From Cycas panzhihuaensis (Eukaryota; Plantae; Cycadophyta), in contig CM041465.1 of the NCBI GenBank assembly GCA_023213395.1, positions 166,725,741 through 166,789,740 on the forward strand: 64,000 nucleotides of DNA, read 5' to 3'. A program made the position numbers and the translations under genes. The stretch's first letter is position 1; the number at the start of each line of letters is the position of its first letter. This document shows positions 7,087 through 62,677 of the stretch, piece by piece. The notes beneath the pieces are model-generated. The model had not been told where the DNA came from, did not search any database, and was given only the letters and a program-made list of their open reading frames with translations.

Positions 7087-7089
7087 CTC

Positions 7090-13279: not shown

Positions 13280-13289
13280 TCTTTATTTA

Positions 13290-16679: not shown

Positions 16680-16705
16680 GTACAAGAAGTGATCCTCTAA
16701 CCAGC

Positions 16706-18206: not shown

Positions 18207-18395
<189 letters not shown>

Positions 18396-18489
18396 TAAAC
18401 TATAGAGTACCGTGAATGCCACATTTTCCTTGATGCTTTTGTTGAATATCACACCTTCAGGTTCTCTGAGCATGTTTGTTATGTTTCAG

Positions 18490-18646
18490 AACAATGATAC
18501 AGAATATGATAAAAGAGGGCAAGATCGTACCCTCGGAAGTGACAGTGAAGCTCCTGCAGAAGGCGATGCAGGAAAATGAGAATGATAAATTTTTGATTGA
18601 TGGGTTCCCTAGAAATGAAGAAAACCGTGCAGCATTTGAGAATGTT
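18490..18646 (+). CDS. UMK: UMP-CMP kinase, next internal exon (NMP-binding, LIDGFPR)
   Basis: [52 protein letters not shown]|gtaagt; phase-compatible with the previous exon across a 140-bp GT-AG intron (18350-18489). Confidence 0.96.
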
Positions 18647-19511
18647 GTAAGTGCATTAGACCCCAAAAGTTGGATTTGGAGGGTTGAAATTTTGGTTGAC
18701 TAATCAAATTAATTTTTGAAATATTCTTTTAGTTGCAAAGCATGTTTAAAACAATTTCAAAGGTGCAGAACATGTTTAGAACAACTTCAAACTTTCCTGG
18801 GTGGTTGGATTGTTTCTTAGCATGCAAATACATGTTTTATGGTTAGAGTATTGAATTATTTTACCTGAAGCATACTTACATTGAAACTCCAAAGCATTGA
18901 AAGTTTCAATTCAATTGAAATGCTGTGAAACATAGTTTGGTGAGGACCAGAGCTTGTAAGAAGTGGCACCTCAAAATGTGAAATGTTTCAATTCAATTGT
19001 GTGTGATATGGTCAACATGGGAAATGCTTGAATTCAATTGAGATACTCTGAAATATGTTTTGATGAGGATCAGACTATGTGAAATGGTCAATGCAGGCTT
19101 GACTCTGAACATATTAAAATGTGGATTCAGCCATATATCATCTTTTTCTTTAAATCTATTTAAAATTTGAAGTTCTAAGTTGCACAATACATGAATACTG
19201 ATGCAGGGTCAGGTTTGTCTGTGCACTGGCAGTTTAAAAGTTTCCTTTGTATAAGGATATGAAATTTTTGGATGTGCAGCATTTGGTAGCCTAAAAATCT
19301 GTCATATAGGGACATGGAAAATTGGTTTAAGAAAACATAAAAATAAAAATGGCCAATATGGAATCTGAAGTTTTCAATGTGACACGAACCAACATTTGGG
19401 ATAAGACAATTACTTTCTAGTATATGTATGGTGTATTTATCTTTTAATACCATTTGTAGGGTAGGGCAGGTGTTGATGGCAGTTGGACAAGATCAGCAAG
19501 GGGATCTAATA

Positions 19512-19672
19512 CATCCCCAAGGGAGGGTAAGGAGCTTGAATACCAATTTATATGATCCCAAGGGAGGGCAAGGAATTCTAATACAGTTTGTTATGATCCC
19601 AAAGGAGGTCAGGGAGCTCTGGTAACTATTGATACTAAGGGAGGACGTCAGGGGACTCTGGTAACTATTGAT
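19512..19672. repeat. Degenerate minisatellite, ~4 x 36-42 bp
   Basis: Recurring GATCCCAAGGGAGG..AGG.A.CT.. units. Confidence 0.7.
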
Positions 19673-20240
19673 CATTTCAGGTCTCCTAGCGATGCATTCC
19701 TCAGTTGTTCCATAGATCATATTGTTGTATGTGTTGTTCCTCTAAGGTGTTCTGCTGCTGGTGCCTTTTCTTGGCGGTGCTACTCCTCTAGTAGATGCTT
19801 TTCTGATGAGTCTTCTCTTGCAGAGTGCCTTTCCAATGGCCTATCTTTTGCAAGTGTCGTTCCAAGGAATCAAGGGGACCGTTGCTCATTTACATGTGAC
19901 ATTCCAAAGCACAAACAATTGGTGTATGCTAAACTGGAATGGATGAATTTTTGTCGGATTGCTAAGCTCTCTCTTTGACTGATTTGTAGTATGCTGAAAA
20001 GGGTTATGCTGGAGCTGTCGGAATCCACTTCTAGCCTTGGAGTTGCTACAAAACATAGGTGAACACATTACAAATCCAGAGAATAATTCAAAGGAGGAAC
20101 CTAGAGTTCTTTCTTCTATTTTGTAACTTAACATGAATGTGTATGTGTACAATGGAATGTGGTCCCTCACTATTTAAAAATGCAAGAATTTAGCATCATT
20201 AGTAGCTAGGATACAGGTAGGTGCAGTTATAAGAAAACGA

Positions 20241-23600: not shown

Positions 23601-23859
23601 TTTGTGCTGCATTAGATGAAGATAAACTTCCTTCTTCCTACTATTTTCTCATCCTTGCAATTCGTAATGCTGGTATTGTTAAAGAAGCTTGGAACATTTT
23701 GAAGGATATGAATGAAAAGATTCTTGAAGAGGTACAAGAGATTGTTGAAAAAGCAAACTAAATTATTGATGATTGTGACACAAGTAAAAAGGTATGCCAA
23801 GATATTGATGAAGAAATTGTGGGTATTGGTGATGAGAATAGTCCTAGTCTTATTTTCTA
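20612..23859 (+). mobile_element. Copia-derived element C (5' LTR, PBS, long leader, gag remnant); 3' part lost; relative of the non-autonomous element D
   Basis: LTR ~20612-20975 ending TAACA; PBS TGGTATCAGAG 20976-20986; leader and gag remnant (~23365-23860, WEIKIESIF..RLWKII..KEAWNILK) homologous to D; interrupted by E. Confidence 0.8.
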
Positions 23860-24810
23860 AGTAACAAGGAATTTAGGATACCTAATTATACATAACATTG
23901 TAAAAGTTACTTAGGGTACCTAATTATTAATTAGGTACACAAGTGACACGTGTCCTACATACAAACTAACTTGAGTTTGTATAAATATGTAAAACTTTCA
24001 AAGGAATGAATGAAGAAAAGAAAGTGAAGACATTCTTTCTTACCCTCTCCTCTGGCTTTATTTAGGTCCTGCCTTCTTGAGAAAACTCTGAGGCCTGAAG
24101 AATCTTCTTTTCCTGTGTACATTTTGTGCCTAAAGCAAGGAGGGCTAAGCAAAAAAACCATATCAATTGGTATCAGGGCCTAGTCGGTCTTTAGGAAGAA
24201 GACCTAAAAAATTTATTTTAGACGTCGTAGAGGTGTACGGATAGTCGTACAGACATTGTATAGAATTGTACGAACCAAGATGAAAGTACTCAAAATTCAA
24301 AAAAAATTTCACCAGGAGGAGCGCAATGGCACAAACAACAGATTTCTCCAAAGGGTCAAAGTCAGAATCTCATCCAAAACTGAGGAAATGATGAAAAAAC
24401 AAAGGGCACGGGTGAAAGGCTTCAACTACAAATTTCGTCCAAAAAACTCAGGCAAATCTCTTCAAATTTCTCTTGAAATCTTCATTATGAATAGATCTAT
24501 CTTTTAAGTATAGATTCACCGCATAAAATTATGTATTTTTTTAAGAAATAGCAAAAATAGCTATAAAACCCTAGTCACAAAAATAACTTTAGATGTAAAT
24601 ATCTCTCTTGAGAAGAAGCCAAATCAAAAACAGACTACAGATCCTGAAAGACGGCTCAAATATCTTTCATTTGAGACAATTTATTTTCTGACCATACATT
24701 TCTGCACGATGGTACAATCGTATTGATTTGTACATTTAGGCAAATTTTTGCATTTCTCTAGTTCTTTTTGATCTTCACACACATATATGTATTAGAAAAA
24801 AAAAATGCTA

Positions 24811-30069: not shown

Positions 30070-33000
30070 TGTTGAAAAACAGAGCAAAGACAGAATCTAA
30101 TTTAAACAGAGAAGAGAAGAGTATATGTTTATTGAGATTCAATCTCCTTAAATATACATCAACAATATGACGGTTACAACCTCTAACGTAACCGATCAGC
30201 CTGAGACTGCCAAGTGGCACAATCTTGCATTATGATTACATTTGAGTGTGGTCCTAACATGGGCCTCTTTCTTACTTAGATAAAACATTACATCTCAACA
30301 CCCCCTCTTAATGTTTTATCTCTAATAATGTTATTTTGTCTCTTAAATATTTGAGCCTAATGTTTTATCTCTAATAATCTTATTTTGTCTCTTAAATATT
30401 TGAGCCTTTCTCTTCTAAGAGGCTTTGTCAGAAGATCTGCAACTTGTTCGACTGTGGGACAATATTCCAAGTCAATTTCTTTATTATGTACCTTTTCTCT
30501 TATGAAATGATGATGAACTTCAATATGCTTTGTTCTTGCATGTAGAATTTGATTTTTGGTAAGCTTGATGGCACTTTGATTGTCGCATTTCAAGGAGGTT
30601 GCCCTTTTTTGCTGTTGATCCAAGTCAAGTAAAAGTTGTCTTAGCCAGATAGTTTCACAGGTTGCTAACGTAGTTGCTTTGTATTCTACTTTTGTAGAAG
30701 AGAGAGCAACTGTAGCTTGTTTCTTACTACACCATGAGATTGCTGAAGACCCTAAGAAAAAGCAATATCCACTGGTGGATTTCCTTTGTTCTTTGTCACA
30801 GGCCCAATCAGAGTCGCAGTACCCTGATATTTTGATTGGGTATCCTTTTAAGTATACTAACTCGAGATCTGTTGTTCCTTTAAGATATCTCAAAACTCTT
30901 TTTGCGGCCTGCCAATGTCTCAACTTTGGATTTTGCATGTATCTGGATATTAGTCCTACTGAGTAGGATATGTCAGGCCTGGTGGTTGTCAGATAAATCA
31001 GACTTCCAATCATTTGTCTATACAAGGTGGCATCTACATCCTTTTCCATACTATCTGCTGTTAAGTCATAATTTGTTTCCATGGGCATTGTACATGGATT
31101 GCAGTTCTCCATCTGAAATCGAACAAGCAAATTTTTGATGTAGTTACTTTGGGACAAGGTTATATAGTTTTGATGTTGACCTACCTCCAATCCCAAGTAG
31201 TAATTTAGTGGACCCAAGTTTGTCATTTCAAATTTCAATAAGTTGACTCTTGATGTCTCTAATTCCTTCTTCATCATTTCGAAGAAGCATATCATCAACA
31301 TAGACAACAATTATTGTTATCTTGTTGTTTGTTTTCCTTATGTAGAGACTGGAGTCGGAGTTGCATCGATTGAACTTATTTTCTTCAAGAAATTGATCTA
31401 ATTTGGCATACCAGGCTTGTGGGGCTTGTTTTAGACCATACAGAGCCTTTTTTAATCTGCAAACCAGATTCTCCTATCCTTGTTCAGCATATCCTTCCGG
31501 TTGTTGCATGTAGACTTCTTCTTCTAGTTCACCATTTAAGAAGGCGCTTTTTACATTTAGCTGGGAGATTTTCCAATTTTGTGTTGCAGCCAAGCCTATT
31601 ATCGTTTTACAGTTGTTCATCTTTACTCGAGAAAAAGTCTCATCAAAATCTACACTGTGCTTGTGTGTACCCTTTTGCGACTAACCTTGCTTTGTACTTT
31701 TCTATCTTACCATCCATTCCCCTTTTTGTTTTGTAAACCTATTTGCAGCTTACAGTAGATCCTATCGACAGGCAGTTCTACTAATTCCCATGTCTGATTC
31801 TTCTTGACTGAGTTCATTTCATTGTCCATTGCCACTTTCCATTCTTGACGATCTTTTGCTTCTTGAAAGTTCTGAGGTTCGACTTTGCTTAGAAGAGCTC
31901 TTGACCTTTGCCCTCGTGTTTTCTGTTCTATTACATTACTTTTCCCTTCTTCAATTGTTTTAATATACCATTTTGGCAACTTTTTCTGTTTTCGTGAGTC
32001 TTCCTTCTCGATGGTGTCTTCTGATACTTGACTGGTTTCACTTGATGATGGATCAGCTTGTCCTTCTTCTGAAGTGATTTCGGAATCATTTTCTTCCTCA
32101 GCTTCTTGTGCTTCTGAGGTAATTTCTGACTTATTCTCTTGCTCATCTTCATGTGTCTCTTCGTGTCTGACAGCTTCCTGTTCAATTTCCTTCTCACCTT
32201 TTATTATTCTAATTTGTGAAAATTCAATAGAATTTTCTTCATTAAAGACGACATCTCTGCTTACATAGATTTTGTTAGTTTTGGGATCTATGCATTTGTA
32301 GGCTTTTGAATTTTTACTGTAGCCAATCAAAATGCATTCTATGCTTTTTGCATCCAATTTGGACATTTTTTTATCAGGAATATGCACAAATGCTTGACTA
32401 CCAAAAACTTTTAGAAGACTTACATCGGGTTTTTGTCCTGTCCAAGCTTCTTCTGGGGTGACATCCTTCAATGCTTTTGTGAGGCTTCTATTTATTAGGC
32501 AACATGCCGTGCTTACTGCCTCTGCCCAATATGACTTTGATATCTTTGTTCCATACATCATGCTTCGAGCCATTTCCATTAGAGTTCTATTCTTTCTTTC
32601 GGCCACTCCATTCGACTGAGGAGTATAAGGAGTTGTAATCTGTCTACGAATTCTTCGATCCCTGCAATAATTTAGAAACTCCTTTGATATATATTCTCCT
32701 CTTCCATCTGACCTGATGCATTTAATTTTCATTCCTGACTCTAGTTCTGCTTCTGCTTTAAATTCTTTGAATGTTTCAAAAACTTCTGACTTATTATGCA
32801 GGAAATATACCCATACTTTCCGAGTGAAATCATCAATGAAAGTTAAAAAGTATCTACATCCATTAATTGTGAGAGGTGTAATTGGACCACAAATATCTAT
32901 ATGTATCAATTCTAATTTTGACTGAGCTCTCCAAGTGCTTTCTTTAAAAGGAAGTCTATGCTGTTTGCCTAGTTGACAACCTTTACAAACAAATTTATCT

Positions 33001-35371
33001 AATGAAATGCTAGGTAGGCCATTTACGATTCCTGATTTTTCCATTAGTTTAAGTGTGTCAATTGAGAGATGCCCATACCTCAAATGCCAAGCTTTATTAT
33101 TAGATTTAGAAGCAAGATGCTTTTTCTTCCAAGTAAGGAAGTACAAGATCCGACAAGAGTTTGTAAAGATCATTACATCCGACTCCTTTTGCAGCTTTTC
33201 CCACCTCTCTTCATATCTAGAATATGACAATTTCCTTCTTCATCGAAAATGGTTCTCAATCCTTTTTTACTTAATTGAGAGACAGAGAGGAGATTCATTT
33301 TTAGATCTGGGACAAACAAAACATTTCTGACCTTTTTTTCATTCCCATCCAGATTTACAGAGATAGTTCCAATCCCTTTTATATTAAGGGAATACTTGTC
33401 ACCCGCTTCACCGATTTGTCTATATTGCAGGGTTTCATGGTTTCAAACCATTCTTCTCGACTTGTCATATGTTTGGAAGCTCCTGAATCTATATACCATA
33501 TGTATTTGTCTTTCATACCGGTAACCAATGCTGTGATGAAGGCCGTCTCTTCTTCCTCCTCTTCATCCTTTTCTTTGCTGTAGCCTCCAATAGGTCGTTT
33601 TCCTTTCTGAATTTCATTTCGTCTCTGTGGACACTGATATGGATAGTGTCCACTTTGTCTGTAATAGCAGTATATATCAAAGATTTTACAACTGCTGGCG
33701 AAATGTCCGGTTTTTCCACAGTTGTAATGCACTGCTTTCTCCGCCCCCTGCCCCTCCTGAGTTTTGCCGTCCTCGTCCCTTGAAATCTGATGTTCCGCTT
33801 TGTCCTCGAAATTGATGTCTTCCTCTTGGCCCGAGATTTAGTCTGGATGCAAATGCAGCCTCTAATTCTGTAGTGTTTTCATATCTTTTGTTTCTCTGTT
33901 CTTGTCTTAGTAACAAACCTGTCAATTCATCAAGGGTTAATTTGTCTAACCTATGACTGTCTGTGATAGTGTTGACGATTGTGTCAAACGATTTTGGCAA
34001 TCTTGCAGTCACAATTTCCACTAGGTCTTGTTCAGAAATTAGACCTCCGGCACTTAAGAGATTATTTCTGATAGTAATAATCTTATGCATAAATTCTTCT
34101 ACGTCTTCATTTTTTTTCATGTGAAGTTTGTACAATTCTTCTTGAAGTGCAATTATTCTTGCCTTATTCTTTTGTCCATACAGATTTTCCAAACATTTCC
34201 AAATTTTAGATGCCAGATTCAATTTTTCAACATAAATCAAGACTGAATCGGAAATTGACATTTTCAAAGTGAGACTGGCTATATTATTTCTTTCCACCCA
34301 GTTTCCTAGCTTAGCATCACCATCTGGAGGACGTTTCTCTGTTCCTTCAAAGAATGTCCTGCATTTTTCACCCTTAAAATGGTTTCTATCTTAATTTTTC
34401 ACACATGATAGTTGGAACCAGTTAATGTTTCTAGTTCAGGCAGAGAAATGAGAGTGGAGGACATTATTCTTAAGGTCAAAGGATGAAATTTGAAGTCTGT
34501 CTGTATAGATGTACGGAATTCCGTACGGAACCCTAAGTGTACGGCCGGAGGAAAAATGTACCTCAAATTCAAGGTTTCTCAGTTGCCTACTTAGATCTGA
34601 AGGCGGATTTGCAAAAAACTTTCTGAAAAGAGAGAAAACTGCTTCGAAAGAAAAAACGGCGGCTAGGGTAGAAAGTTGATTTTTGAAGAAATTACTGAAA
34701 TAATCTTTTAGAAAAAATTTTCGAATCTGGATGGAAACTCAAGATATTATCACTGAGAAGGATTTATGACTGGAAGTACCCGATATTATGAGCAAATCGA
34801 AAAGATTTTTGAGAAAGAACCTCCAAAACCGCCCGGACTGGTTCGGGCTCTGTTTGGCCTGCAAAACGACCTCAAATGACTCGGCTCCAGAAGAGAAATG
34901 TGTTTAGCGTGTTCCGATCTAGCTCCCCACCAAATTTCGCTTCGATCCAACACTTTGAAAAAATCGCGTCCGTACACGGCCGTACAGTTTCGTACGGTTA
35001 TGTACACCAGAGTAATAATGACCTTTAATCGATACAGAAACCCTAACTGCCTTGTCTGCTTCTTACACCCTTGATTGAATTGTCTTGACAGAAGAAATCA
35101 TTTCAAAAAGATCGCTTTAGATCGACCGCTCGATACCATGTTGAAAAACAGAGCAAAGACAGAATATAATTTAAACAGAGAAGAGAAGAGTATATATTTA
35201 TTGAGATTCAATCTCTCCTTAAATATACATCAACAATATGATGGTTACAACCTCTAACGTAACCGATCAGCCTGAGACTGCCAAGTGGCACAATCTTGCA
35301 TTATGATTACATTTGAGGGTGGTCCTAACATGACCCCCTTTCTTACTTAGATAAAACATTACATCTCAACA
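30070..35371 (-). mobile_element. Full-length Ty1/copia element G (youngest in window), inserted in RT of E
   Basis: LTRs 30070-30300 and 35139-35371 (7 substitutions + one 2-bp indel by eye); perfect TSD TATTC; PBS TGGTATCGAGC (35128-35138, -); PPT complement CCCCCTCTT 30301-30309. Confidence 0.97.
30357..34464 (-). pseudogene. gag-pol polyprotein of G (gag, two CCHC knuckles, PR, integrase, RT, RNaseH), split by several frameshifts
   Basis: ORFs 33686-34297, 33379-33732 (WYIDSGASKHM), 31707-33230 (HIDICGP, TPQSNGVAERKNR), 30357-31310 (YCDSDWA, HARTKHIEV). Confidence 0.95.
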
Positions 35372-40119: not shown

Positions 40120-41335
40120 AATGGTTAGGAAATTAAGGTATGGGATATGTAAGTTCTTGTGGTGCCATTATTTATTCAGTCATATAGTGATAGTATTGAT
40201 TTTTATGTGATGGAAGCCATTATGATGCCATTTTCAAGGCAAAAGTGGTTGCATGTTTTTGATCTTGAAACCAATTTTTGGGAACGTACCATGAAGCTTG
40301 AACGTGGTGGTTGTCAATGTAAGGTTTGCAAACCATTTGCACGGTGTCATCCATTCAACTAAAGGAAGCATCTCGATAGCATGAGAACACACATTTATGC
40401 AATCATTATTGAGGAATAGTCAAACAAACAATTGTTCAAATGATATTGGCTATGGTTCGTGTAGCCTCTAAAGTGAGTTTGTAGTTGTATTCCTTAAAGA
40501 TTTGCCTTGTGGTTTGCCTATTGCAAGAGATGTGGACCATTATATTGAGTAAAAACGTAAAGCCAAACCCATTTCTAGATTCCTACATTATCTTAGTTTC
40601 TTTGTATAGGAGGAGGTTAAGATGCTAATCATAGAGTTGATGGAATAAAGGTTCATTCATCCAGCTAAGTTGTCATTTGAGTTCCAATTTTATCAATATA
40701 GTAAAACTAGGGTTCTATGAAAACTTGTGTAGATTATAAAGACCTAAATAAAGGCTTCATAAAGGATAAATATCCAATGCCTTAGATTCATGGTGTTTTG
40801 GATTAGTTAAAAGGTGTAGAATAGTATTCTCAAAGGTTGATTTGAGAGGTGGCTACCATCAATATAAATTTAGTCTTTAGATGTGCAGAAGAGAACTTTT
40901 AGCATATGAGATAGGCATTATGAATATTTATTCATACTATTTAGGTTGACAAATGCTTCTATTACTTTTATGATGTTGATGAATGGAACACTTTGTTCTC
41001 ACTTGAATAAATTTGATGTTGTTTTCATTGATGACATATTTATGTTTAGTTAAAAAACCAAGGATCATTGTGAACATTTAAGGAGGGTGTTATAGATTTT
41101 AAGGGAGCATAAACTATATATTAAGCTATCAAAATGTGATTTCTTTAATAAATAAATTTCTTTTGGGTTGTAGTGTCCTTAAAGATGTAGGGGTACTAGC
41201 TCCTAAGAACATCCAACCAATAAAATATTTCTATTTTCATCATGAATTGTTGGTAGTGATTCTTGCCATTAAGACCTAGAAGCACTATTTTTAAGGTAAG
41301 AAGCTTAGAATCTATGTAAATCATAAGGCATTGGT
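40120..41335 (+). pseudogene. Very decayed Ty3/gypsy PR-RT-RNaseH remnant
   Basis: LPCGLPIARDVDHYIE, DYKDLNK..KDKYPMP, FIDDI, ELLVVILAIKT*KHYF; many stops. Confidence 0.75.
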
Positions 41336-42578
41336 TCACTTCCCTTGAAAATGAGTGATCTATTAGGGGCATTTGTTGCTTAAATGTAGCAAAAGAAGGA
41401 CACAAACATGCTAAGAGAGAAATGCCTTTTATCATATGATGTAGAATTTTAGGGTCTCACAAACATTAAAAATACAATACCTTTAGTGAAATAAAATCAC
41501 TTGTATCAAACGAATATTGTTAGAGTATAATGTTTAATGTTATATGTGTCTAAGTGTGTCTTAGGGTCAATAGTCATAGTCCTAAGTATTAGGGTCTAAG
41601 AGTCATTTATTATTATAATATCATGTGGGAAGATAGAAGCTCATTGGTTAGTTAGCTGGTGTAATGTCATTGGCTATGTTAGAGGTATTTGTCCCACATG
41701 GATCACATCTCTTATACGATCTCCCACCTGTTTTGTATATAAAGGTGGTTGAGGTAGTGTATATAATCAAGTCATCATTAAGACTCATGTTGAGTCTATG
41801 ATGCATGAACGTCGTGATGTTATCTTATTTGTGTTCTGTTAATACAAGCTTTGTATTGTTCATTGATATTGTTGGTGATGAATACTTTCCCTATTAAAAT
41901 CTAACATGGTATTAGAGCAGGTTGTTTGTTAAAGCTATTGTTGTGTAGGTTCGCCATCTCTATGATAAGGGAGGAAGGTGACTCCGTTAGATTGGCTGCC
42001 AGATTGAAGAGTTGAATTGAGGAAGTGAAGTTCTAGGTCAACCTGCTGTAAGAAGAAGATTGAGAGAAGGGAAGCTCAACAATGAAAGATAGAGCATTCA
42101 AGCAAGGAGGTGGCTCCATAGAGTTCAATACCAGTTTGTGACTTAGCTCGAAGAAGATGAAGCCCTAAAGTGCCAAGTATTGATGCAAGGCATAATTTAC
42201 CGGATAATATTGCTCTTTTGCTTTGTGCAAGAAACCTTGTGCCATAGATTTGTGACTGGTTGGCTACTATATTATGGTTGTATGGTGATAGTGAAGGGTT
42301 TATACTTGTGTTTGTGTTGAAATCTATTGTGGAAATAGTTAAGAAAATTCTGTTGGTGAAATCTGAGCATGGTGTTTGTGGTCGGTGTTTATCAAGTATT
42401 AATTTTGGCTTAAAACCAACATGTAGAAATCAACCACAACTACTGCATGATAAAATTTTTTTAAGAGAAAATCTTTCACTAAGAGCCATTTGTCAAAGAT
42501 TGTTGTTGAAAGGAAAATCTGAATTGAGCTCATAAGGCTACATTGTGAAGAATCATTAGTTTTTGGAATCTATCTAAT

Positions 42579-42787
42579 ATCGCCCATTACGTAAGCGTTG
42601 CCTCCAGAGCCAAGCTTTCCAAAATATTTCTCCATATAACCCACTTCCTCTGCAAAACTCCGTTGTATCTGACATGCCTGACATTGAGAGCTAGACTGCT
42701 CGCATTGCTCAAAATCAGAGGTATTGAATAGAGCAGCTTTGTGGTCCCACAAGTCTTAAGAATGATCTTCAGAAGATAAACGAAGAG
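42579..42787 (-). pseudogene. SAMDC: Captured S-adenosylmethionine decarboxylase fragment, antisense within D
   Basis: [41 protein letters not shown] then, after an internal deletion and frameshift, [28 protein letters not shown]; matches the plant SAMDC SLFVY..IKTCGTT..PHR.F.EEV..YFGKL motifs. Confidence 0.9.
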
Positions 42788-43413
42788 AGCAAAACTTCGT
42801 GTTGTAAGTCATTAATACGACGATATTTTTATGAAGTTGCAGTCACAGTTGTGGATATATCTTAGTTGTGATAAATATTTCGTCTAATATTTGCATTGCG
42901 TCGGTCGTGTGCGATGATTGTGATATATTATCATAATCACCCGTCTGTTTATTGATGCTACCATTGATATTGTTGACGTTGTGCCACCATCTCCGCGTAT
43001 ATTTGCAGGCATCTTTTGCATGATGTAAATATGTAAAGTCATTTGGCCTGTGTTTAATCATACCTGCTGCATATTTATGTAGTATATGCGTTGATTTTTC
43101 AGCCATATACATTACAGTTGCAGAGACGTATATGCAGCCGTCATTTGAGCCGCTGCCGTGGAATATATATTGTTCACCCGTGATGCAAGTACTGCCTTAT
43201 TTACAGTCGATTGGTTAATTAAGGCCACCCTTAATAGACGCATTGATATTTATCATTTTATTAGCGATTTATATATGTTGCTTCATCATTCTATTGATAT
43301 CTTTGTCGTGGATTGTAGGCTCAAGGGCAACGCCATGTCGATTCAACAAAGTCGCAAAAGATCAGCACCGTGATAAACTGAGTGAAGCTGCTGCATCACG
43401 GTCGGACCTGATG

Positions 43414-43691
43414 AATTGATGGCACAAAACCGCTATGTTCTCCAAGCACCCCTCGAAGACACAAAACATGCCATCTATCGTAGCGAATGTTTCAGGTTTA
43501 AAGAGAAGTTGGTTGTTATGGGTATAAACCATTGCAACGACGTCCCCAAGCTTAATGTAAACTACTTTGAGCCTAGTAGAAACAAAGGATCCCGTTAAAT
43601 CCGTGCCATTCTTCCTTGCATCTGTGAGTGAGTGGGCGCTGGTCAATTCCTCTGGGCTCTCTGCAACAGATCTCTTGAAGACTGCCAATAT
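43414..43691 (-). pseudogene. Captured TSJT1/Wali7/AILP1-like (DUF3700, Ntn-hydrolase-like) N-terminal fragment, antisense within D
   Basis: (I)LAVFKRSVAESPEELTS...VVAMVYTHNNQLLFKPETFATIDGMFCVFEGCLENIAVLCHQ; start codon reads ATA instead of ATG. Confidence 0.88.
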
Positions 43692-44172
43692 TTTGGCCAA
43701 GCCAATAGTCCAACCCAGGCAAACCAAAATTGCTGTGAGGATCAAGGCACCGTCGCCTCAATCTGTAAGAACCAGATTAAAAACAGGTTAGGGTTTTGGT
43801 CTTAATGGTTCCTTTTTCTCTAAATGATGTTTAATCAAGATGAATGAGTTGGTCGAGTCCGCCAAATATTAAAGCACGGTTTTTATTTTGTCTAAATATC
43901 ATTGCGCTTGGAGTTGGTCTATTAAGTAAGTGAATATGATTCCTTAATGTTTTAATGGTGATAAAAGGTGATTATATTAATGGACAAGTAAGGAAAAATT
44001 TTAGAGTATTGTTATTGGTGTCAATATTAAAAATCATTGATTGATAATAGGTCAAGAAGGACAAGTTATTTGGTAGAAATACTTGAGTGCAGGTAAGAAA
44101 GCAAACCTTGGCTTGTACTTGGCTATGGTGAATGGTCACATAAATCTTGAGTAACACTTTCAATCCCACAAT

Positions 44173-44560
44173 ATAGAGTTAAGTGAAGTTATTACCTTTG
44201 TAGCAGAGAAAAAGGAGTTTTGGGTAACAGACACCAACATATTTTTGCTTAAATATGTTAGAGTTAACTTTTGAATTTGAAAAATTAAAATGGAATGTGT
44301 TTTCAGGATTAAAGGATTTTGGAACATTGTGCTTGGAACAATTTCAATTAATGAAGAAGGGGAGGTTACCTTCAAAAAGAAAAATAGAATAGCCGTTGAT
44401 GCAATAGTTGCAACTTTCGACAAGGAGAACCTTCATCCTTCATGTCACTTTCTTATCCAAAGACTTCAAAATATTGACTAGCTGAAGAGGCTTGGAATCT
44501 GTTAGCAGAAGTGCATGAAAAAGGTCCTGAAGAAGTGTAGAAGAGTATTAGAAGGACAAG
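44173..44560 (+). pseudogene. Copia gag N-terminal remnant of D
   Basis: KIKMECVFRIKGFWNIV...EEAWNLL; homologous to the gag remnant of C. Confidence 0.65.
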
Positions 44561-47500
44561 GAACCAAAGGAAGAAGCTGAAGAGGAAAGTTAAAAATCAA
44601 CTTGACTCTAGTAAGATCAATCCTTACAGATATTCCTACAGCGAATGAAAGGTTGAAATCTAATGAAGATAATGAAGACTTGGGTTCACCAAATGTTTTG
44701 AGCCTCACCAAGATGACAGGGAAGTCCAAAAGAGCAGAAGTTGAAGAGTCTGAGCATCAATCTTTGCAGGTAATATTTCATGGAGACACATGCACCCTGA
44801 CAGAAAGTATGGGCAATATTATCCTAGTTTGTGCTGACAGATTTGTAGCCAGAATTAAAATAATATTATGACATATAATGGTATGCACATATTGGAGACT
44901 ATCTATGATTCCTCTCAACTCAGTCACATCTTTTATTTTCATCTTTGAAAGAATTCAAATTGTAACAGCATATCTTACAATAACTCTAAAAGGTTCTTTT
45001 AAAGAAAGAAGGAACATAGATAGAATACTATATGATCAAAATCTTATCCATCAAGATAGTTGTATGTTTTGGATAGGCTACTTAATCACGAGGTCCAATC
45101 ATGCCAAAGTAATGTTCCATTTTTGTGTAGCCATAATTGGGAAATATGTGCACATAGTCATTATGAGAATCCTAATCATACTTGGTACAAAGAATTTTTT
45201 GGGTAACATGGAGAGTGCAAGGCATCTTGTTAGTTCTGGACATACATCAAAATAGGAAAAATTAGGAAAGGAATCATTATTGCTCCCTTCCTTTCAAGGA
45301 GGTGACTAATGGCTTGAAAAGTCAATCATCCTAGCAAGCTTGAAGACAAACAAGGAGGAGACTACTTGCTTCATGGAGTTGAAATCACATATAATCATGT
45401 TTGATCCAGGAAGACCACACTTTCACGAGGAACACACAAGAAGATTCATCAGACAGGAAACAAGAGGCAGCATAACAGACAAGACATACATGTTTTACAA
45501 CATTTTGGTTGAAGACAAAGCTTATGACATCGTCTTTAGAAAAATTTCAAGACTTAGGAAATGGAAGTTCAAACTCAAGTTAAGTCCTATGTCAATTTGT
45601 GTCAGTCTCGTCAAGTTGTCCTTAGTTATTGTAGTCTCAACATTAAACATTAAGGGGAGGTGCTTGAGTATAATGTTTAATATTATCTGTGTCTAAGTAA
45701 AGTGTGTCTTAGGGTCAATAGTCATAGTCCTAAGTATTAGGGTCTAACAATCATTTATTATTATAATATCATGTGGGAGGATAGAAGCTCGTTGGTTAGT
45801 TAGTTGGTGTAATGTCATTGGCTAGGTTAGAGATATTTGTCCCACATGGATCACATCTCTTGTATGGTCTCCCACCTTTTTTGTATATAAAGGTGGTTGA
45901 GGTAGTGTATATAATCAAGTCATCATTAAGGCTCATGTTGAGTCTATGATGCATGAACGTCCTGATGTTATCTTATTTGTGTTATGTTAATACAAGTTTT
46001 GTATTGTTCGTTGATATTGTTGGATATTGTTAGTGATGAATGCTTTCTATGTTAAAATCTAACAAATATACCAAGGAAGAAATGTGCATAAATACAAAGG
46101 AGACTAGTTAGTATGTGAAGTAAGTGTCCACCATATAGAGCTTGCCATTTTTATGGCTATAGTACAAATAGAATGTCTTAAAGTACAATAGAAAGTACAT
46201 ATAGTACAAGTACAAAATAGAATGATACATTAATATCTTTAACCCCGATAAACAACCCATCGCTCCCATTTCTTCCCCCCTCAAACAAAACAAAAAAAAA
46301 AGAAAGAAAGAAAGAAAGAAAAAAAAAAAGATCATACCTTTTACTCCTATTTGATTTCCAAATAATATGAACTTATCTTTGCTTAAAGGCTTAATGAAGA
46401 TGTTTGCATGTTGTACTTCACTAGGGTAGTAGATTAGCTCGATCTCTTTGTTTTGAGTTTTCTCTCCGATGAAGTGATTATGAACCTCAATGTGCTTGGT
46501 TCGAACATGAAAGATGGGATTTTTGGCAAGCTTGATTACACTCTAGTTGTTATAGTTGATTATTGTGCGATGAAGTTGAGTCTACCCGTCGTCTTTCATA
46601 ATTCTTCTCAACTAGATCACTTCACAAGTAGCCCTTATGGCTACTTTGTATTTTGTTTGGACCTCTTTCTCAATAATTGATGGTGAAGTCTCTTCAATAC
46701 CACCACCTCCGTTTAATACTAGAATTTCAATCAAGTTGGAATTTTCATCCTAGGTTTGATATGTTTGTAAACTTTGGACTTTTCATTGTAGCCTACAGAG
46801 ATGCATTTTGAGCTTTTCTCATCTAGTTTAGTCATTTTTTCTTTTGGAATATGTATAAAGGCAGTGCTTGCAAATATTCTCAAATGACTTATATCTTGAT
46901 TTTTATTGATTCAAGCTTTTTCTATGGTTCTTCCTTTAATAGCTTTTGTTAGACTTTTGTTGATGAGGTAGATTGCAGTCTTGACTGCTTTGGTCTAAAG
47001 ATTGTTTGGTATCCCCTTTCTTTTCAACATATTTCTTGCCTTTTCTGTAATTGTTTTGTTTTTCCTTTCAACCACTCCATTTGACTGAGGAGTGTAGGCC
47101 ATTGTTAATAGTCTCTTGATCCCATAGGCTTTGTAGTGTTTGTAGGAGCCATTGGAAGTGAATTCTCCTCAATTATTTCTGAAAATTTAAATTTTTTTCT
47201 AATTCTTTAAGAGATGTAGTCTTCATGCATCCACAGAGATCATTGTGCACAATTTCTAGTTTGTTTATTGCTCTCTATGATGTCTCTAGGAATTGATTCT
47301 TGTATTGTTTCTCTGTCATTCATCCTTCACATATCCTTTCATTTCCTTCTATGTTTGATAAATTATTTACCATGTTGGGTTTTTTCAGCTAAATCAGGCT
47401 TTCTGATATTTCAAATGCCTATACCTCAAGTGTCATATTTTGTTCATAGGATTTGGATTGCTTGCGTAGGAGTTGCCATGAATTTATAAAGACCATGTTT

Positions 47501-53855: not shown

Positions 53856-56151
53856 AGTGAGAGTTGAATTGATGAAAAAATTTAAGCTAGGAGCAGACCC
53901 AAAAATGAGATGGTTCAAAATATTGGGGCTCTAGACTGTGAGACTGGAGCACATATCCGTGGTGTTCGATAGGCCTCCAAAAGGCATTCCCTTAGGAGTA
54001 AACGAATGCAAAGATTTTGAGGTTAACAAATAGAGGAGCCATAGCGTGTTTAAAAGAATCAAGATTCAAACTTCAAAAGAAAACTTGATTTCAACCCCTT
54101 GTAGACTAGTTATCATTCTCACATTCAGCATGCGATGAGGAAACAAACAAATCAAGAGTGTTGACTGGGTGATGATCAAGGGAAAAAATTTGAGACATAA
54201 TTAGATGTCCATTGGGAGTGAAGTTTCTTGTCCAAACTAGATGAAATGTAGGTCAAACATCAATAATGGAGACGAGTCATGATGCGCCACGCCCTAGGCA
54301 ATTGCCTCACACAATATTCATGTGTCGTTCTCACAGTAAAATAATAGTACGTGATAAACATGTAATTGGAAGTTGCTCCTCCAAATTAAAAGATTTATAC
54401 CTTTTAACTTTTATTGATGACACACTATTCTATTTGCTAACAAGAGCTAACATTAAAGCCTTCATGAAGCCTCCACACAATGGCCTCTTCATAAATTAGA
54501 AAAAAACCACAATACTTTGCTTTGATACCATGTAGAATTTCAGAGCCTTGTAGACTCAAAACACAATTATCGAGGAAGAAATGTACATAAATACAAAGGA
54601 GACTGGGTAGGATGTGAAGCAAGTGTTTAACATGTAGTGCTTGCCATTTTCATGGCTATGGTACAAATAGAATGTCTTGAAGTACATGAATAGAAAGTAC
54701 ATGAAGCACAAGTAGAAAATAGAATGATACACTAACATCTTTAGCACATGAGAGTATCAATTTACAAGTGTGGAATGCTACGTGTACTTGTTTGCTTTAT
54801 AGCAAGCTAGAAAAACCCAAAAGGACTACCTTTTGGGGTTAGGTTTCCCCTCCTATAGGCAAAACAATAATTGACTCGAATAATGACTTCTTGGCCCATT
54901 GTTTTATGTTGTTGCTATTCTACTAACCTTTCATCTATTGGATTTTGCTTATTGAGTTATAGTTCAATGACTTATGTTGCTAGGTGTCTAGCCTTGATTA
55001 CTAGTTGCTTGACTCTTGTCATCAATCATACTCAATTACTTGTCTTCCCTTAGAGTTTTTAATTGTATCTATTCAAGACTAGTCTTCCCTCTGTAGGAGT
55101 GATGACACATTGAACAATTCTATAAATAAAAATAAAAAATAAAGGCAAATATTTCTAGCCTTAAACAAGTCCATATATAATGCCTTTTAACCTTTATCTT
55201 CTCTTTGATAAATCTATGAAACACTTGCTTCTCTTTGGTAACTCTATGAAGCTTTTGCTTCTCTACTAGGGCACTTCCACTTTGTAGAAATAAAGCAAGT
55301 AATATGGAAGAGATATCTCCAATCAATTTGTTTCCTTGTTTAAATCAAGAATTTAATGTTCCCTTACTTCACCTGTATTACTGATTATTTATTTGACACC
55401 CTCTTGGCATGTGACGTATTTGCTTATAGGTTCATCTTTACTTTGCAATTAAATTACCATGTGGTACATTAATTTCCATCTCCAATTTCTAATGTCTACT
55501 TTATTTTTTTAGTACTATGGCCTTCACCCTTTTTCCAAAATATATTGGTGATGTTAGAGCTAGCCTAACTTTTGTTTGGTTGTTTGAACCTAGTTTTGTC
55601 ATAGGGTCTTGAATCCACAAATTGGATTCAAGTCTAAATTGGGTTTGTGAACCCATAATCTTGCTTGACACAAGTGGCATTGAAAGACATTTTATTGTGG
55701 GGAAATCTATAAAATTGTGACTCATTTACTTATACTGTTTTTATAAGCATAAATATTGTTAGTAATTTGTGTCTTATATTAAAAGGGCTTGTGTGACATT
55801 TTCAAGACTCTCTGTAGGGGTATTCAGGTTGGTATTAAATACCATCCGTATGGATGGTATAGGTATCATTGTATGTGAGAAGAGATAGTATAGGTACCGA
55901 GTGTCAAAAAAAGGGAGGTCGTGATTCTTATTGGTGATGCTTTTAGCATTTCTTTTTGATGTATTGTACTTGGTTTGCTTTGATAGTTCCATTGATTGCT
56001 TTTGGATACTTGTGGACGTTAACATAATTTCTTTTTTTGTTTCTTTTATACACATTGGTACCAATGTTTTTCTACCTTATTGAGATGGATATTGCATTTG
56101 AAATGGCTTGCTATAAGTATTTTCCATATGATTGGTAGAGGTATGGCCGTG

Positions 56152-59100
56152 TGTAGGAAGAGTTGGTCAACGCAGCCAACCAAACCCAATTTAATGAAGT
56201 TCTTTTGAAGGCAAGTGAAGCTATACCAAATTCAGGGCAGGAAGAGCACCCTTGATATAGAGTGGGGGGAGAAGCAAAATCTAAAATTTTGAAAATTTGA
56301 AATTGTGCAAGGATGCTCAACCCTTTTGTTTGACCTGGGATAGATGTTGAGGTAAACTCTGGTACTTGCGTGATTTTGGACAATGGAAACGTAGGAATGC
56401 ATGTTTATCCTAACGCGAGGAATGGAGGAAGACATCAGTTGAGGGGTTGTATGGAGGAACACATGCTAGGAAACAATGAACATGGCCATAAAAGAGTTTT
56501 GGGGGAATGGATGACAAGTTGGATTCTAGAACGAAATGCAACATAGTCTAGAACACACCTCGAGGAATGCATGGAACCCACATCCAGATTGAAGTGACAT
56601 GTTTTAGATATGCTGATGTCATCCCCGGTGGTACGTTCGTACAGATGAAAACTTATGTTAAAGAGGCATAATGAATGTCATTAATGAGAAGGTGTGATTT
56701 GTTATTAAAAGTCACAATTGTCAATTGTTCCTCAAAAGGACTTTCGTAGTGTATTTAATGTTGAATCAACCACCATTTTGGTATGAGAGCTGAGTCAATG
56801 AGTCTTGTGATACATTCTCTAGTGTGAGAGCTGAGTATATGTAAGGGATGTTATGGTGTAATGCATGTGGAACGTTCCCCAAAGTGATGTAAAGCCATTG
56901 GACATTGATATTGCTTAATGAAATTATGAGTCACATGGGAAGTTTTGTATTTTGTGCATGGTTGTGATTAATTTTTTAGTTCATGTTGATGCTGTGATAG
57001 TGACATGATGATATTTTGTTAATATGGCATATGTGTGATCTATGATGACATCGCTATGTTGACCAAGCCCTTGACAAGTGGACTTTCATAGGGATGAAAG
57101 TAGAGTCAACGTTGGTTCCATTGCCTACATCCATTGAGAAGGGGACTAGGCCGGAGTTTGCCATACATATTATGCAGAAAGATCAAGGAACCCTGGTGGT
57201 CATTGTGATGGCAAGTCCTAACAAAACATTTGACAGCCAAGGGGCCTTCCAATGCCACCAAAACGACCTTCAAAGGTGGGTGAGCCACTGAAAATACCTT
57301 CACCATATTGGGATCTAGTAGACAAATGACTTTAAGATGGTCAAAAGAGGCAAATTTGAGAAGGTTTAGGAGGTTTAAGCCTCAACAAGAATGACAAGAC
57401 TAAGGGCCAGTCTATTGAAGGGTCTGAGGCAAGTGGTGCCCAAACACTTCAAGAACTAGAAAATTAAGGACATGGAGACCCAATGGTGGTGATACCACCT
57501 ACTTGGATTCAATCAGATATACTTAGCCCAAAAGAAAAATAGGAATTCTAGAACATGAAGAAAATCCAAAAGAAAATGATACTTTAGAAGAAGAAGGTCA
57601 AACCCTAGGGAAGGAGGAAGGGATAAGTGTGGATTCTAATGCAAAGGATGTAAGTGATCATGAGGAAAAGGTGAAGGAAGGTCCGTTGGCATATTGAGAG
57701 AACTGTTTGATAAGATAATTCTTTTAGGATTCACCAGATAAGGGGTCCGAGAAATCATTCCTGATAGCAACTCCATTAATATTGCAAATACTAAGAATTC
57801 TAGAACTTATTCATCTAAAGAAACCCTTTAAGAATCTTTTGTTTGAGAGACAGTATTGGGAGGAGCACACCTAGGACACCATTGAAATCCAATGTAGGGG
57901 AGGAAGAAGTTATACCCCCAAAGTCACATTGTTTAAGTGTTCGAGCAAAGAAAGTACACCACCTAGTTCTCCATAGGTAGGAAGTGCACTATTGGATTTG
58001 CCAAAAGATGGATGATTCAAGGGAATTTGGGAAGTTAATCTTCAACAACTCATCAGATGCCATAGAACATGTGTATTTATTTCAAAATTTGGAAAATGTG
58101 AGGAAAATCATGGATGAAAACAAAATTAAAACTAGATTTGCATGCACATTATGGGAAGTACTGTTGGCATAGTAGAAAGAACTGGATAAAGTAGAAACTT
58201 AGGAAAAATGTGAAAAAGAAATTTGAGGAGAGACTGTAGAAGTTTTGTAGCAATGAAGAAATCGCATTAAAAGAAATCAAGAAGAGACCTAGATGGTCAG
58301 TGTTAGCTTATATAAGTTAGATGAAACTTATTTTAACCAACATGATAATCAAAATTAATGGATCACAATATGAAGAACTGCTTTGTCAGGGGATTAAATG
58401 AGAAATTAAGATCAATGATGTAGACACATCCATGGAAATCCCTCAAGAATGTGCAAGAATTGGCCCTAGATTTTGAAAAAAAATTGGATGCTCAGACAGG
58501 AGGCCACAATCCATTATTATTAAGTTTACAAGAAGAGCTGCGAGAAATAAAACAACAACAACACAATTGGCCATTCTTCCAAATGGAGAAGGAAGAAGAG
58601 GAATTTGAGGTGGAATTCATAAAAAAAGAGGTGGCAAGATTAAAGTTGAAAACCCAAAAAGAGGAGGAAGACAAGGGAAAAAGGAGGAGGGAAGAGAATT
58701 CCAAGTTGAGAAACAGTGCCATATCTGTGAAGAAGACTCCCATTCCACAAAGGAGTGCTAGCTTAATTGTGGTGAGCCTTAACCACATGTTAGAGAGGGT
58801 TAATATATTGGGAGGTTAAGCACGATAAAGGTTAAGGAGCTTAAGGTTAGGAGTATTTAATAAAAGTGGAAATGTGGGATTGGGTAGCTGATAGGTAGAA
58901 TGATATAATAATGAGCCGATCCTCTTATAAATATGACACCTCCATCTCACGTAATGTTATGTTGATGTTTATGAATATAATCTTATTTTGGGTTCACTTT
59001 GGTGTCCTCTTGGTTCTCATTTGGTGCTCTCCATCTCCACCCTCCATTCCATCTATCTCTATCCCTTGGCATTCTTACTGTTTGCTCTCATATTGTTATG

Positions 59101-60506
59101 GTAACAAGGGTTGGCCTGTAACATATGGTATCGGAGCTAGGGCAAGGACAATTTTTCTTTCCTCCTTATTTAATGCAGGTGTTGAAGACATTATTATTAG
59201 AGGAATGGCAAGCTTGTTGAAGGGCTTATAGAGTCAAAGATCCAATTAGTAGGGTTTATGTGTAAACCTTGTAAACCCTAGTAGTGGGCTCTTTCATCAT
59301 CTATTGCTATAGTATGCCATACCATCATGGAGATGCCCTATTTTCTTTGCAAGCCATAAGTATTTTTTGCGCCATTTGATTTTGTCCATTATGAAGTAAT
59401 ATATGTCCACGATTGTATTGCTTATTGAGCCATTCCTTGTTACACCATATGACTGCCCTCTTCAATCGAGGAGTTATCAAGTTTGTTGTAAGCTTCAACC
59501 TTTGTTTGTCTATCTATCGTTTAAAGCTTTCAATCAAGCTGTACCATTCGATTGTGATCTTTTTGTGCTAAGAGATTGTTGTCTGCATGAGATGGGTACA
59601 TCTTCCATCACCATGATCCATTTCATCTTTGTCATCATCAATTTGGGTTGTGTTTGAGGGATTTATGCCTGTAACGTGGATCCGAATCGTATTTTCACCC
59701 ACCATGGTTTGCCTACATCCATGAAGCTCTTGCATCATATTCATGTCTGGGTCCACTCCTCATAAGACTTTTCGTGAGCTTCTGTTGATGTTTTGCCTCT
59801 ATTTGTAATTTGCCCATCCCTGTGCATAATCGTGGAAATCGAGACGTCTGTGTGCAACTGCGCCACTGTTTGGTTGTGATATACTTCGAGCAACGATTGA
59901 GCAAAGAATGACCATGAAATAGATGTGAAGAAGAGAACCCAATGCTACAAATGCAGATGCAATGTTTGAACGCAGTTTATAGAGAGTTGGGATATGGCAA
60001 TGACAAGCGAAAACGTTTGTAGAATGGTTCGTATTGAATTTTGCAATTATCAATGGCAGCAAAGTTTTCAAATTGTGATGTTTAGTTTGCTTACTAAAGT
60101 TGAATAAAATAAAATTAAATTGCATTTGTATGTGAGGTCCCCCCAATACTATTAGCCAGTGGTCATGTGCACAATATAAGGTGACAAACTACTTTTGCAA
60201 AGGGGCTTAAGATCAATTAAAAGGGTACTTACAAATTATTAGCACCTCCGTCCACACTTTCAGCCATATCTTCTTTATACAGACTCAAAATTTAGTTTTG
60301 TCAGATTCTTTGTTTTGAGGGCTTCAATTTGGACTATCACAAAACATATTTTGGGCTTTCTTTGTGGTAGATATTGATGTTTGAAGTCATGGTTACATGT
60401 CATGTCAGTTTTATAGTTTATGGCCGTTCAAACTTTGGCTTGTATGCCATTGCTCTTGAGGTCATAATATTGGATTAAGGGGGCTAACCAGCCATAGACA
60501 CCTGTT

Positions 60507-60539
<33 letters not shown>

Positions 60540-62677
60540 AACATCATGACCACATTCCTTCACTTTGATATTGAGGCAGCCTCGAAGGCATGCTTTGAAT
60601 GAGTCCATTGTCGAGAGGATGACAAAATTCGTCACAATATTGACTATTTCCAAGGTTGACTTCGTGGTTGGGCATGTAGTTGGTTACTTGATATGTATGG
60701 TACCCATATAACTTGGGATCTCTTCATTTCGACTCTTCATATAAAAATTTAGGAACTATGTTCGCATCATCTTGCAAAAGAACATGCTAAGCGAGATGAG
60801 GAGGAAAGGAGGTTACATGTTGAAGAAGAAAGGAGGTTAGCCCTTTAAAACTTCATTGATGGACTCATGAGGTTATATGCTAAGCTATTTTCCAACCCTT
60901 CAACACCTTCAATAGTGCCAGATGAAGCTTGTATATAAGAGGTTTTGGAGGAGCAGGATCACTTATCAAACATAGTTGTGGATGAGCATGCAATGGATCA
61001 TGCCAAGCAACTTGAAGACAGTACCTCACCTACATCTCTTCCATAGGATAGTGTGATCATACCTCAACTAGTTCACCTGGAAGAAGTCATAAGCCTCCCC
61101 CATTATACAAGGTAAACTTTCAGACAATAAGGATGACCTTCCTCCTCCTCATGGTGGTGCACCATCAACATTTAACATGCAGGAGAATTTGGGTTCTCAT
61201 TTTTGTGGATCCCAATATTATTACTACACCATGGGCTCACATTTGTTTGGCTTTGATAGCCAAACAAAGGAGTCACTTTTATTTGATCTACATCACCAAT
61301 TACATGGACTTGTGCATCACTCCTCAACAAGAAGTTCTGCAACAACAATGTCTTCTCATCGTAACATTTTATCAAACCACTTCGTATGACATATTAGTAG
61401 TAGTAGGTGGTGGATCCATGTATTCTTATTAGGATGCTTTGAAGGCAAGGCATCTTAAGGGGGGAGGGCATGTGGTGAGCCTTCACTACATGTTAAAAAG
61501 GGTTAATATATTGGGAGGTTGAGTAGGGTAAGGGTTAAGGGGGTTAAGGTAAGGAATATTTAATAATAGTGGAAATGTGGGATTGGGTAGCTTAGAGGTA
61601 GAAAAATAATAAAAATGGGGTGATCCTCTTATAAATATGACATCCCCATCTCATGTATTGTTATATTAATGCTTATGAATATAATCTTATTTTGGGTTCA
61701 CTTCGGTCCCCTCATGGTTTTCATTTGATGCTCTCCATCTCCACCCTCCATTGCATCCACCTCCATCCCTTGGCATTCTTACTCTTTGCTCTCATATTGT
61801 TATGATAACATTGGTTGGCCTATTACATTAACCCTAAATATAGTATAATAAGGAAACAAGATAAGTGTTGTCATATATGCGGCATTGACGATCACAATAC
61901 CAAAGAATGTTATTTTAATCTTTGAGGGAAAAGCTACAGAGGAAGAGGCAGAAGCAGAGGAGCAGACTCAATCGGGCATCTCCAGGCCATCAGAAATGCA
62001 CTAGAAGCATCAAAGAAAAAGGCATCCATTGGAAGATGCTTGGCGTGTTTGGAATTCAACCATTGGAAGTTTGATTGTCTAATAGCCAAAGCAATTGAGC
62101 AATGCCTTTTTGTGTGTAAAGTTTGCGTGCTAGGAAACCACTATACAAAAGATTGTAAAGGGAGGCTAAGGTCACAAATCTAATGACCATAGTTCCCAAA
62201 CCTAATAAAAATGTAAAGTTACAAGCAAAAAGTTAGACCAAGAGGAAATGGTAGTAGACAACTACCTTAATCCAAAGATGGAAATAAATCATTTTGAAGC
62301 CGCAAAGAGAACATTGGAGGAAGTAACGAGAAAAGAGTAGGAGAAGAAATTACCTATGAGCAAACCCTATCACAAAATATGCATATATGAGAAGAAATAA
62401 GTTTAAGGAAAAGGAATCAACACTTTTGGGAGCATCAATACAACCACAACCACATAGAGTCCAGGCCGAGGAGTTGTTCAAGGGATTACCAACAGAGTAC
62501 ATACTGAGAATATTGTTGATAATGGAAACCTTGGTGAAGCAATTGTATCTAACCATTTTGCTTGAACAAGTAATTGAGTGGATTAAAATGGGAGTGTTGT
62601 AGCATAAAGAATCCATCAAGAGTTTGATGAAGGCAATGCCCTCTTTCAATCTTGATCCTATAGTTACTATTATAAGC
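56152..62677 (+). mobile_element. Ty3/gypsy-type element O (putative ~1.07-kb LTR 56152-57223, gag with three CCHC knuckles), hosting L and M
   Basis: TGTAGGA...TCCTAACA termini (tentative); Retrotrans_gag-like KTRFACTL..W ~58000-58450; knuckles at 61869, 62037, 62115. Confidence 0.6.
58768..61827 (+). mobile_element. Complete non-autonomous gypsy-derived LTR element L (3.06 kb)
   Basis: LTRs 58768-59123 and 61471-61827; flanks TTAAT/TTAAC; PBS TGGTATCGGAGC 59126-59137; PPT AAGGGGGGAGGGCA 61457-61470; gag remnant LRGWACSW..ITWDLF ~60640-60760; no pol. Confidence 0.9.

Follow-up and report, generated by a model that had tools for sequence, protein, structure and literature searches.

Positions 41518-46064 of a 64,000-nucleotide stretch of Cycas panzhihuaensis DNA (contig CM041465.1; the whole stretch is called the window here) are a decayed, non-autonomous long terminal repeat (LTR) retrotransposon of the Ty1/copia type that belongs to a very-high-copy family. 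About 1.4 kb of its backbone, between the leader and a gag remnant, is replaced by foreign sequence found only here. This foreign sequence, the cargo, contains fragments of two unrelated host genes, SAMDC and DUF3700/TSJT1, both antisense to the element, and the DUF3700 fragment was copied from a spliced mRNA. The best explanation, which we regard as probable, is LTR-mediated retroposition, in which reverse transcriptase (RT) switched templates onto co-packaged host RNA.

Anatomy of the element

An earlier note on this DNA had described a non-autonomous LTR element with both LTRs, a primer binding site (PBS), a polypurine tract (PPT) and a perfect AATAT target-site duplication. This description was confirmed, with coordinates right to within a few bases. 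Copy number was read from Logan contigs of three whole-genome runs, from three related taxa, which were placed on 41300-46300 at a likeness of at least 85%; one further run was only guessed to be RNA and is called the possibly-RNA run below. The element and its cargo are made up as follows.

41518-46064, + strand: whole LTR element, non-autonomous Ty1/copia type
41513-41517, no strand: left target-site duplication AATAT, read directly from the sequence, same as 46065-46069
41518-41906, + strand: 5' LTR, 389 bp, TG..CA ends, TATA-like motif TGTATATAAAGG; pairs with the 3' LTR at ~94% identity
41907-41918, + strand: PBS TGGTATTAGAGC, tRNA-iMet type with one C>T mismatch, abutting the CA end of the 5' LTR
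41919-42578, + strand: leader common to the family; by contig depth, 41919-42134 is high-copy and 42135-42578 mid-copy
42579-42787, - strand: SAMDC mRNA fragment in two frames (Pfam; PDB, 1MHM_A)
42788-43412, no strand: single-copy spacer within the cargo, 625 bp; depth ~4-14, CpG observed/expected ratio (o/e) 1.21-1.25
43413-43691, - strand: DUF3700/TSJT1 fragment, residues 1-94, start codon reading ATA, without intron 1 (Pfam 6.8e-19)
43692-43971, - strand: probable DUF3700 5' untranslated region (UTR), then low-copy sequence; right end of the cargo; depth ~10-56, CpG o/e 0.34-1.0
43972-45651, + strand: 3' interior kept across the family, with a decayed gag remnant at 44290-44481 and without pol (Retrotran_gag_2, contig depth)
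45652-45660, + strand: PPT AAGGGGAGG, immediately 5' of the TG that opens the 3' LTR
45661-46064, + strand: 3' LTR, 404 bp, TG..CA ends, full-length alignment to the 5' LTR
46065-46069, no strand: right target-site duplication AATAT, read directly from the sequence

Aligned end to end, the LTR pair differs by 24 substitutions in 389 columns and by three indels (Kimura two-parameter distance 0.065). From this divergence, and at substitution rates commonly used for plants, the insertion would be ~2-5 million years old. The AATAT duplications match at 5/5 positions, with a chance probability of ~0.0014, and the site holds a single insertion made by integrase. The PBS agrees at 11/12 positions with the canonical copia tRNA-iMet PBS, a sequence well established for Ty1/copia elements, by which we classified TGGTATTAGAGC.

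The interior between the LTRs is 3.75 kb long. Its sole retroelement match is Retrotran_gag_2 at 44290-44481, which is weak (E 0.037; 13.9 bits against a Pfam cut-off of 27). None of the RT or integrase families of Pfam was matched among the element open reading frames (ORFs) scanned, and stop codons occur in all three frames across 44139-45660. A search of Rfam with the whole element gave no match.

The SAMDC and DUF3700 fragments

Searches of Pfam and PDB and with tblastn confirmed that the element carries SAMDC and DUF3700 fragments, both antisense, and no RT or integrase, as had been claimed. The SAMDC fragment consists of two pieces. The first, 42662-42787 (-), corresponds to residues 3-44 of the potato SAMDC alpha chain 1MHM_A (Pfam 2.3e-10, PDB 1.3e-9), and the second, 42579-42665 (-), to residues 58-86 of the same chain (Pfam 0.0099, PDB 0.0048). 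They abut at 42662-42665, with ~13 codons (~40 nt) gone between them and the frame shifted; a deletion of this kind is typical of copy-choice errors. Contigs of the possibly-RNA run align at the SAMDC piece only across 42582-42769, with loose ends on both sides and a joint at 42661/42664, and one of these loose ends translates onward as SAMDC coding sequence. We take them to be putative parent mRNA, and their joint fits an internal deletion in the SAMDC piece. Both that deletion and an mRNA origin of the TSJT1 fragment had been proposed in other notes on the window, and the present tests agree with them. The coding region of plant SAMDC is not known to contain introns, and the SAMDC piece is therefore uninformative on spliced origin. 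In two of the whole-genome runs, a contig of depth ~70 skips 42 bases (42660-42701) in the SAMDC piece; this contig suggests a SAMDC-like sequence present in about 14 copies.

The DUF3700 piece gave one colinear tblastn alignment (3e-32), and no further DUF3700 exons were found elsewhere in the element with tblastn. Intron positions were taken from plant DUF3700 genes in a metagenome scan of transcripts and genomic contigs. At nine plant genomic loci with exon 1, the tblastn alignment breaks after residues 66-68 and resumes ~0.5-1.4 kb on. Five loci were read base by base, and exon 1 ends at '..LLPR' in 5/5; the start of exon 2 is preceded by AG in 4/4 loci where it was captured. Several truncated DUF3700 proteins in the database diverge at the same point. 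The cargo runs uninterrupted through this conserved position ('..LLFKPETFATIDGMFC..'). Because intron 1 is present in all five loci read and absent from the cargo, the DUF3700 piece is, as judged from these alignments, a copy of a spliced mRNA. Its homology stops at residue 94, midway through exon 2, which means that the spacer next to it is not intron sequence of the parent. The DUF3700 genes of the metagenome scan, which come from other plants, are all rather distant from the cargo (67% DNA identity at best). Three database proteins of 366-1223 aa (P0004, P0011 and P0023) include 6-11 stretches in tandem that are similar to the same short part of DUF3700; they look like translations of arrays in which a gene fragment is repeated.

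The missing intron also bears on the nature of the carrier. In plants, mosaics of fragments from several genes are carried most often by Pack-MULEs, Pack-CACTA elements and Helitrons (PMC13317346), and such a DNA transposon could have brought the gene fragments along when it inserted into the LTR element. These carriers, however, pick up introns together with the genomic DNA that they capture, whereas the DUF3700 piece derives from spliced RNA. We found no terminal inverted repeat or target duplication at the cargo borders and no inverted repeat of at least 40 bp in 40500-47000, and with intron 1 absent as well we rejected a Pack-MULE, Pack-CACTA or Helitron carrier, a reading to which we assign hardly any probability. 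The cargo replaces backbone rather than interrupting an intact element, as the 3.75-kb interior has no pol and the borders carry no duplication.

The right end of the cargo at 43692-43971 probably opens with the DUF3700 5' UTR, whose extent we infer. The spacer at 42788-43412 is without match in Pfam, Rfam or the protein collections, the remaining cargo ORFs have no match in Pfam, and the 89-aa spacer ORF has none in a scan of viral contigs. Protein homologue searches with the 127-aa DUF3700, the 89-aa spacer and an 89-aa 3'-interior ORF were empty within a length window that excludes full-length parents. Composition sets the cargo apart: the LTRs, leader and 3' interior have a CpG o/e of 0-0.3, the two gene pieces one of 0.62-0.65 and the spacer one of 1.21. 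No other 625-bp stretch of the window is as rich in CpG as the spacer (1.25, against a window median of 0.28). A high CpG content fits an origin distinct from that of the long-methylated backbone. Such a content does not by itself prove host origin, because the leader of a copia element at 34.4-35.3 kb is equally CpG-rich.

Copy number, timing and route of capture

Summed contig depth along the element and its left flank was as follows.

Left flank: ~10
LTRs: 10,000-80,000 (5' LTR 10,000-75,000)
Leader to 42134: 1,500-10,000
42135-42468: 100-500
Bin 42469-42635, which runs into the SAMDC piece: ~30-230
42803-43637: 4-14
43972-44138: 130-480
44139-45641: 4,000-20,000

Given depths in the thousands for the LTRs, leader and 3' interior, the family to which the backbone belongs is very abundant. 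In all three whole-genome runs the cargo core at 42803-43637 has about the same depth as the single-copy left flank, and the boundaries between high-copy and single-copy sequence are sharp, near 42.5 and 44.0 kb. We conclude that the cargo is unique to this locus and that the element is a chimeric copy which was not amplified later and has since decayed. The earlier note had proposed that the element moved with its cargo, and had named confinement of the cargo to this locus, the outcome seen here, as a result that would refute mobilisation. Amplification with the cargo is contradicted by a core depth of 4-14 against thousands for the backbone; a single integration of an already chimeric cDNA is compatible with these depths.

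The insertion is not recent. Contigs matching the cargo with few differences were present in one taxon (4/384 and 6/234) and in another (12/406 and 3/153), and contigs spanning the junction of left flank and LTR (41300-41542, 2-3 differences) were present in two taxa, which indicates that the insertion is shared and old. At least two of the sampled taxa, and probably all three, diverged after it took place. Unlike the single-copy left flank, the right flank is repetitive: a ~170-bp repeat at 46074-46243, 5 bp past the right target duplication, has a depth of ~1,000 in the whole-genome contigs, and a second copy at 54573-54745 is 87% identical.

An earlier capture followed by repeated transposition with the cargo would have produced a cargo-bearing subfamily. 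The mid-copy zones at 42135-42468 and 43972-44138 (depth 100-500) do suggest a nested subfamily history, and the contig of depth ~70 overlaps the SAMDC piece in two taxa. Siblings that arose after capture are, however, expected to be at least ~90% identical and so to lie within the 85% placement limit, and at that limit the cargo core is at single-copy depth in each of the three whole-genome runs. A further hint that capture preceded insertion comes from the divergence of the cargo from its parent, which exceeds that between the LTRs (see below). On balance we consider such a subfamily improbable.

Divergence also provides a view of the timing. A second DUF3700 contig, from one taxon, differs from the cargo at 27/189 positions (~14%, ~86% identical), and we take it to be a candidate parent or paralogue. 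The difference between the cargo and this nearest parent-like contig (27/189, 14%) is larger than that between the LTRs (24/389, 6.2%; Fisher p 0.0026). If no closer relative than that contig exists, the cargo is at least as old as the insertion, since 14% is more than 6.2%; this argues against filler acquired after integration and allows capture at or before insertion.

Such filler would have been laid down when a gap in a resident member of the family, opened by a double-strand break or by a target-primed event of the long interspersed nuclear element (LINE) type, was filled with pieces of host cDNA in any orientation. It would explain the antisense orientation without special steps of reverse transcription and the confinement of the cargo to one locus, and a mosaic of short pieces with unassigned filler resembles plant filler DNA. 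The cargo borders, on the other hand, showed neither a poly(A) or poly(T) tract nor a direct repeat of at least 9 bp, and the end of the mRNA that the fragments retain is the 5' end, whereas LINE retrocopies keep the 3' end. Filler also predicts a cargo-parent divergence below that of the LTRs, where 14% was observed against 6.2%. We therefore judge filler to be rather unlikely.

Retroposition by template switching is supported because the intact ends, the replaced interior, the partial spliced mRNA, the multi-gene mosaic and the copy-choice deletion match what has been described for this process (PMC5131818). Both fragments are antisense to the PBS-to-PPT direction, and the cargo sits at the boundary between leader and gag. 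In the mechanism that we favor, RT would switch several times, within a virus-like particle, between the element and co-packaged host RNAs, and this repeated switching would account for the mosaic structure and, by copy choice, for the internal deletion. The complement of the mRNA would enter the plus strand of the element, resulting in a cargo that is spliced and antisense. The switches would most likely occur in plus-strand synthesis, just after the second strand transfer. We infer this stage because copying of a sense mRNA into the plus strand leaves the cargo antisense, and because plus-strand synthesis runs from the PBS and leader toward gag, which coincides with the position of the cargo. 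A polymerase that ran off the 5' end of the mRNA would leave a DUF3700 piece reaching the start codon and the probable 5' UTR. An equivalent route, in which minus-strand synthesis copies host first-strand cDNA, would lead to the same result. A standard minus-strand template switch gives sense cargo and cannot give cargo that is both spliced and antisense.

Several points weigh against retroposition as set out here. Transduced sequences usually lie in the sense of gag-pol (PMC7264820), and the published retroposition cases are sense-oriented (PMC5131818). The element departs from this usual orientation, with both fragments on the - strand of a + strand element, and to account for antisense cargo a further assumption is required. 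As there are only two fragments, they could point the same way by chance (p 0.5 for the second, given the first). The source of the 625-bp spacer is not among the matches found. The contigs are fragmentary and of low coverage (~5x). Finally, 14% against 6.2% fits capture before, rather than at, insertion unless a closer parent was missed, which may be the case because coverage is low.

Genomic setting and known systems

The element is co-oriented with a UMP-CMP kinase gene, as the earlier note had stated, and two exons of that gene were located on the + strand.

18231-18350 and 18527-18640, + strand: UMP-CMP kinase exons with the P-loop and the FLIDGFPRN region, short intron between them

With exon motifs of plant UMP-CMP kinases (FDC, DDN and others), no later exon of this kinase was detected on the + strand between 18640 and the end of the window, 45 kb further on, and the remainder of the gene is not within the window. 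Any intron holding the element would therefore exceed 45 kb, and its placement within a UMP-CMP kinase intron is putative.

The earlier note had also raised a possible regulatory role, in which transcripts of the element or of the host intron, being antisense, would pair with SAMDC and TSJT1 mRNAs and give rise to small interfering RNAs (siRNAs). The fragments have the right orientation for this and the 5' LTR keeps its TATA-like motif; conflict through siRNAs between captured fragments and donor genes has been documented in maize, according to work cited in PMC13317346. Against such a role, depth was zero over 42803-43971 in the one possibly-RNA run, the element is old and decayed, and residence in the intron is only putative. 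Moreover, the fragments are shorter than 280 bp and the DUF3700 piece is ~14% diverged, so that few perfect 21-nt matches are expected. Because the fragments are short, one of them is ~14% diverged and the copy is old and decayed, a trans-acting siRNA role of the cargo appears unlikely, and we give the regulatory reading as a whole very little credence.

Three other LTR elements lie in the window.

20620-23860, + strand: LTR element without pol; LTR ending at 20976, then PBS TGGTATCAGAG; gag-like remnant at 23495-23761
30143-35371, - strand: near-complete copia element with gag (33686-34297), a protease region, integrase (31707-33230) and RT (30357-31310); its 5' leader (34400-35300) has a CpG o/e of ~1.2, like the cargo spacer
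58769-61828, + strand: small LTR element of 3.06 kb; 356-bp LTRs ~88% identical, PBS TGGTATCGGAGC, G-rich PPT, TTAAT/TTAAC flanks, internal A-rich tract at 60508-60545

The first of these had been assigned to the same family as the element at 41518-46064. That assignment is weakly borne out, in that the two share only two short matches of ~78% identity and are not the same family at the DNA level. About 2 kb of its interior, and the interior of the element at 58769-61828, have no Pfam match. A wider test for antisense cargo in these neighboring interiors (~20.6-23.9 and 58.8-61.8 kb) thus gave no cargo identifiable by Pfam.

A more general reading is that the element is one example of a process acting across the genome, whereby gag-only copia-type families may load antisense copies of spliced host mRNAs into a fixed slot just downstream of the PBS and leader, by plus-strand switching. 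We put this forward tentatively, as a possibility that falls short of even odds; in this window, it draws on the anatomy of the element at 41518-46064. No description of antisense capture by plus-strand switching was found in the literature. If the reading is true, the genome would have been seeded with very many antisense fragments of host genes under LTR promoters. An antisense bias that held across the family would reveal a distinct step of reverse transcription for the uptake of host RNA, and would mean that a large plant genome is systematically supplied with antisense sequence from host genes.

Capture of host mRNAs by template switching in LTR-mediated retroposition is known from yeast Ty1 and, from Drosophila to mouse, from the work of Tan et al. 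(2016; PMC5131818), and partial mRNAs and multi-gene chimeras are documented for it (PMC5131818). As in those cases, the element described here has kept both LTRs and the target duplication while its internal part was replaced, and it is a non-autonomous pseudo-element with partial, intron-less mRNA copies from more than one parental gene. It differs in that the published cases are co-oriented, often with in-frame sense transcripts, whereas the cargo here is antisense, and in that the captured pieces sit in a plant family of the copia type with no more than a gag remnant.

Among plant elements, maize Bs1 is likewise an LTR element without pol that retains gag-related sequence and has gained, via RNA, short fragments of several unrelated host genes (three in Bs1). 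In Bs1 the fragments make up a hybrid sense ORF, which is both transcribed and translated (PMC13317346); those of the element at 41518-46064 are antisense, frameshifted and separated by a spacer, with no sign of expression. TR-GAG elements share with it the two LTRs, the PBS and PPT, gag as the only retroelement coding remnant and the need for an autonomous partner. They are, however, defined by an intact gag ORF, where the element here has a sub-threshold gag remnant with stops and so falls outside the group, and host-gene cargo is no part of the TR-GAG definition.

Surveys of gene-fragment capture by transposable elements cover maize, including siRNA conflict with donor genes (as cited in PMC13317346), and gymnosperms and 23 vascular plants (PMC13477047). 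The element resembles their cases (PMC13317346, PMC13477047) in holding gene fragments within a copia-type LTR element, and belongs with the minority of host elements that carry at least two; antisense orientation and spliced origin were not among the criteria of these surveys. Capture of host gene fragments by LTR elements is thus already established, and the element at 41518-46064 alone is one more case. What makes it stand out is the combination of a spliced-mRNA origin with antisense orientation at the boundary between leader and gag.

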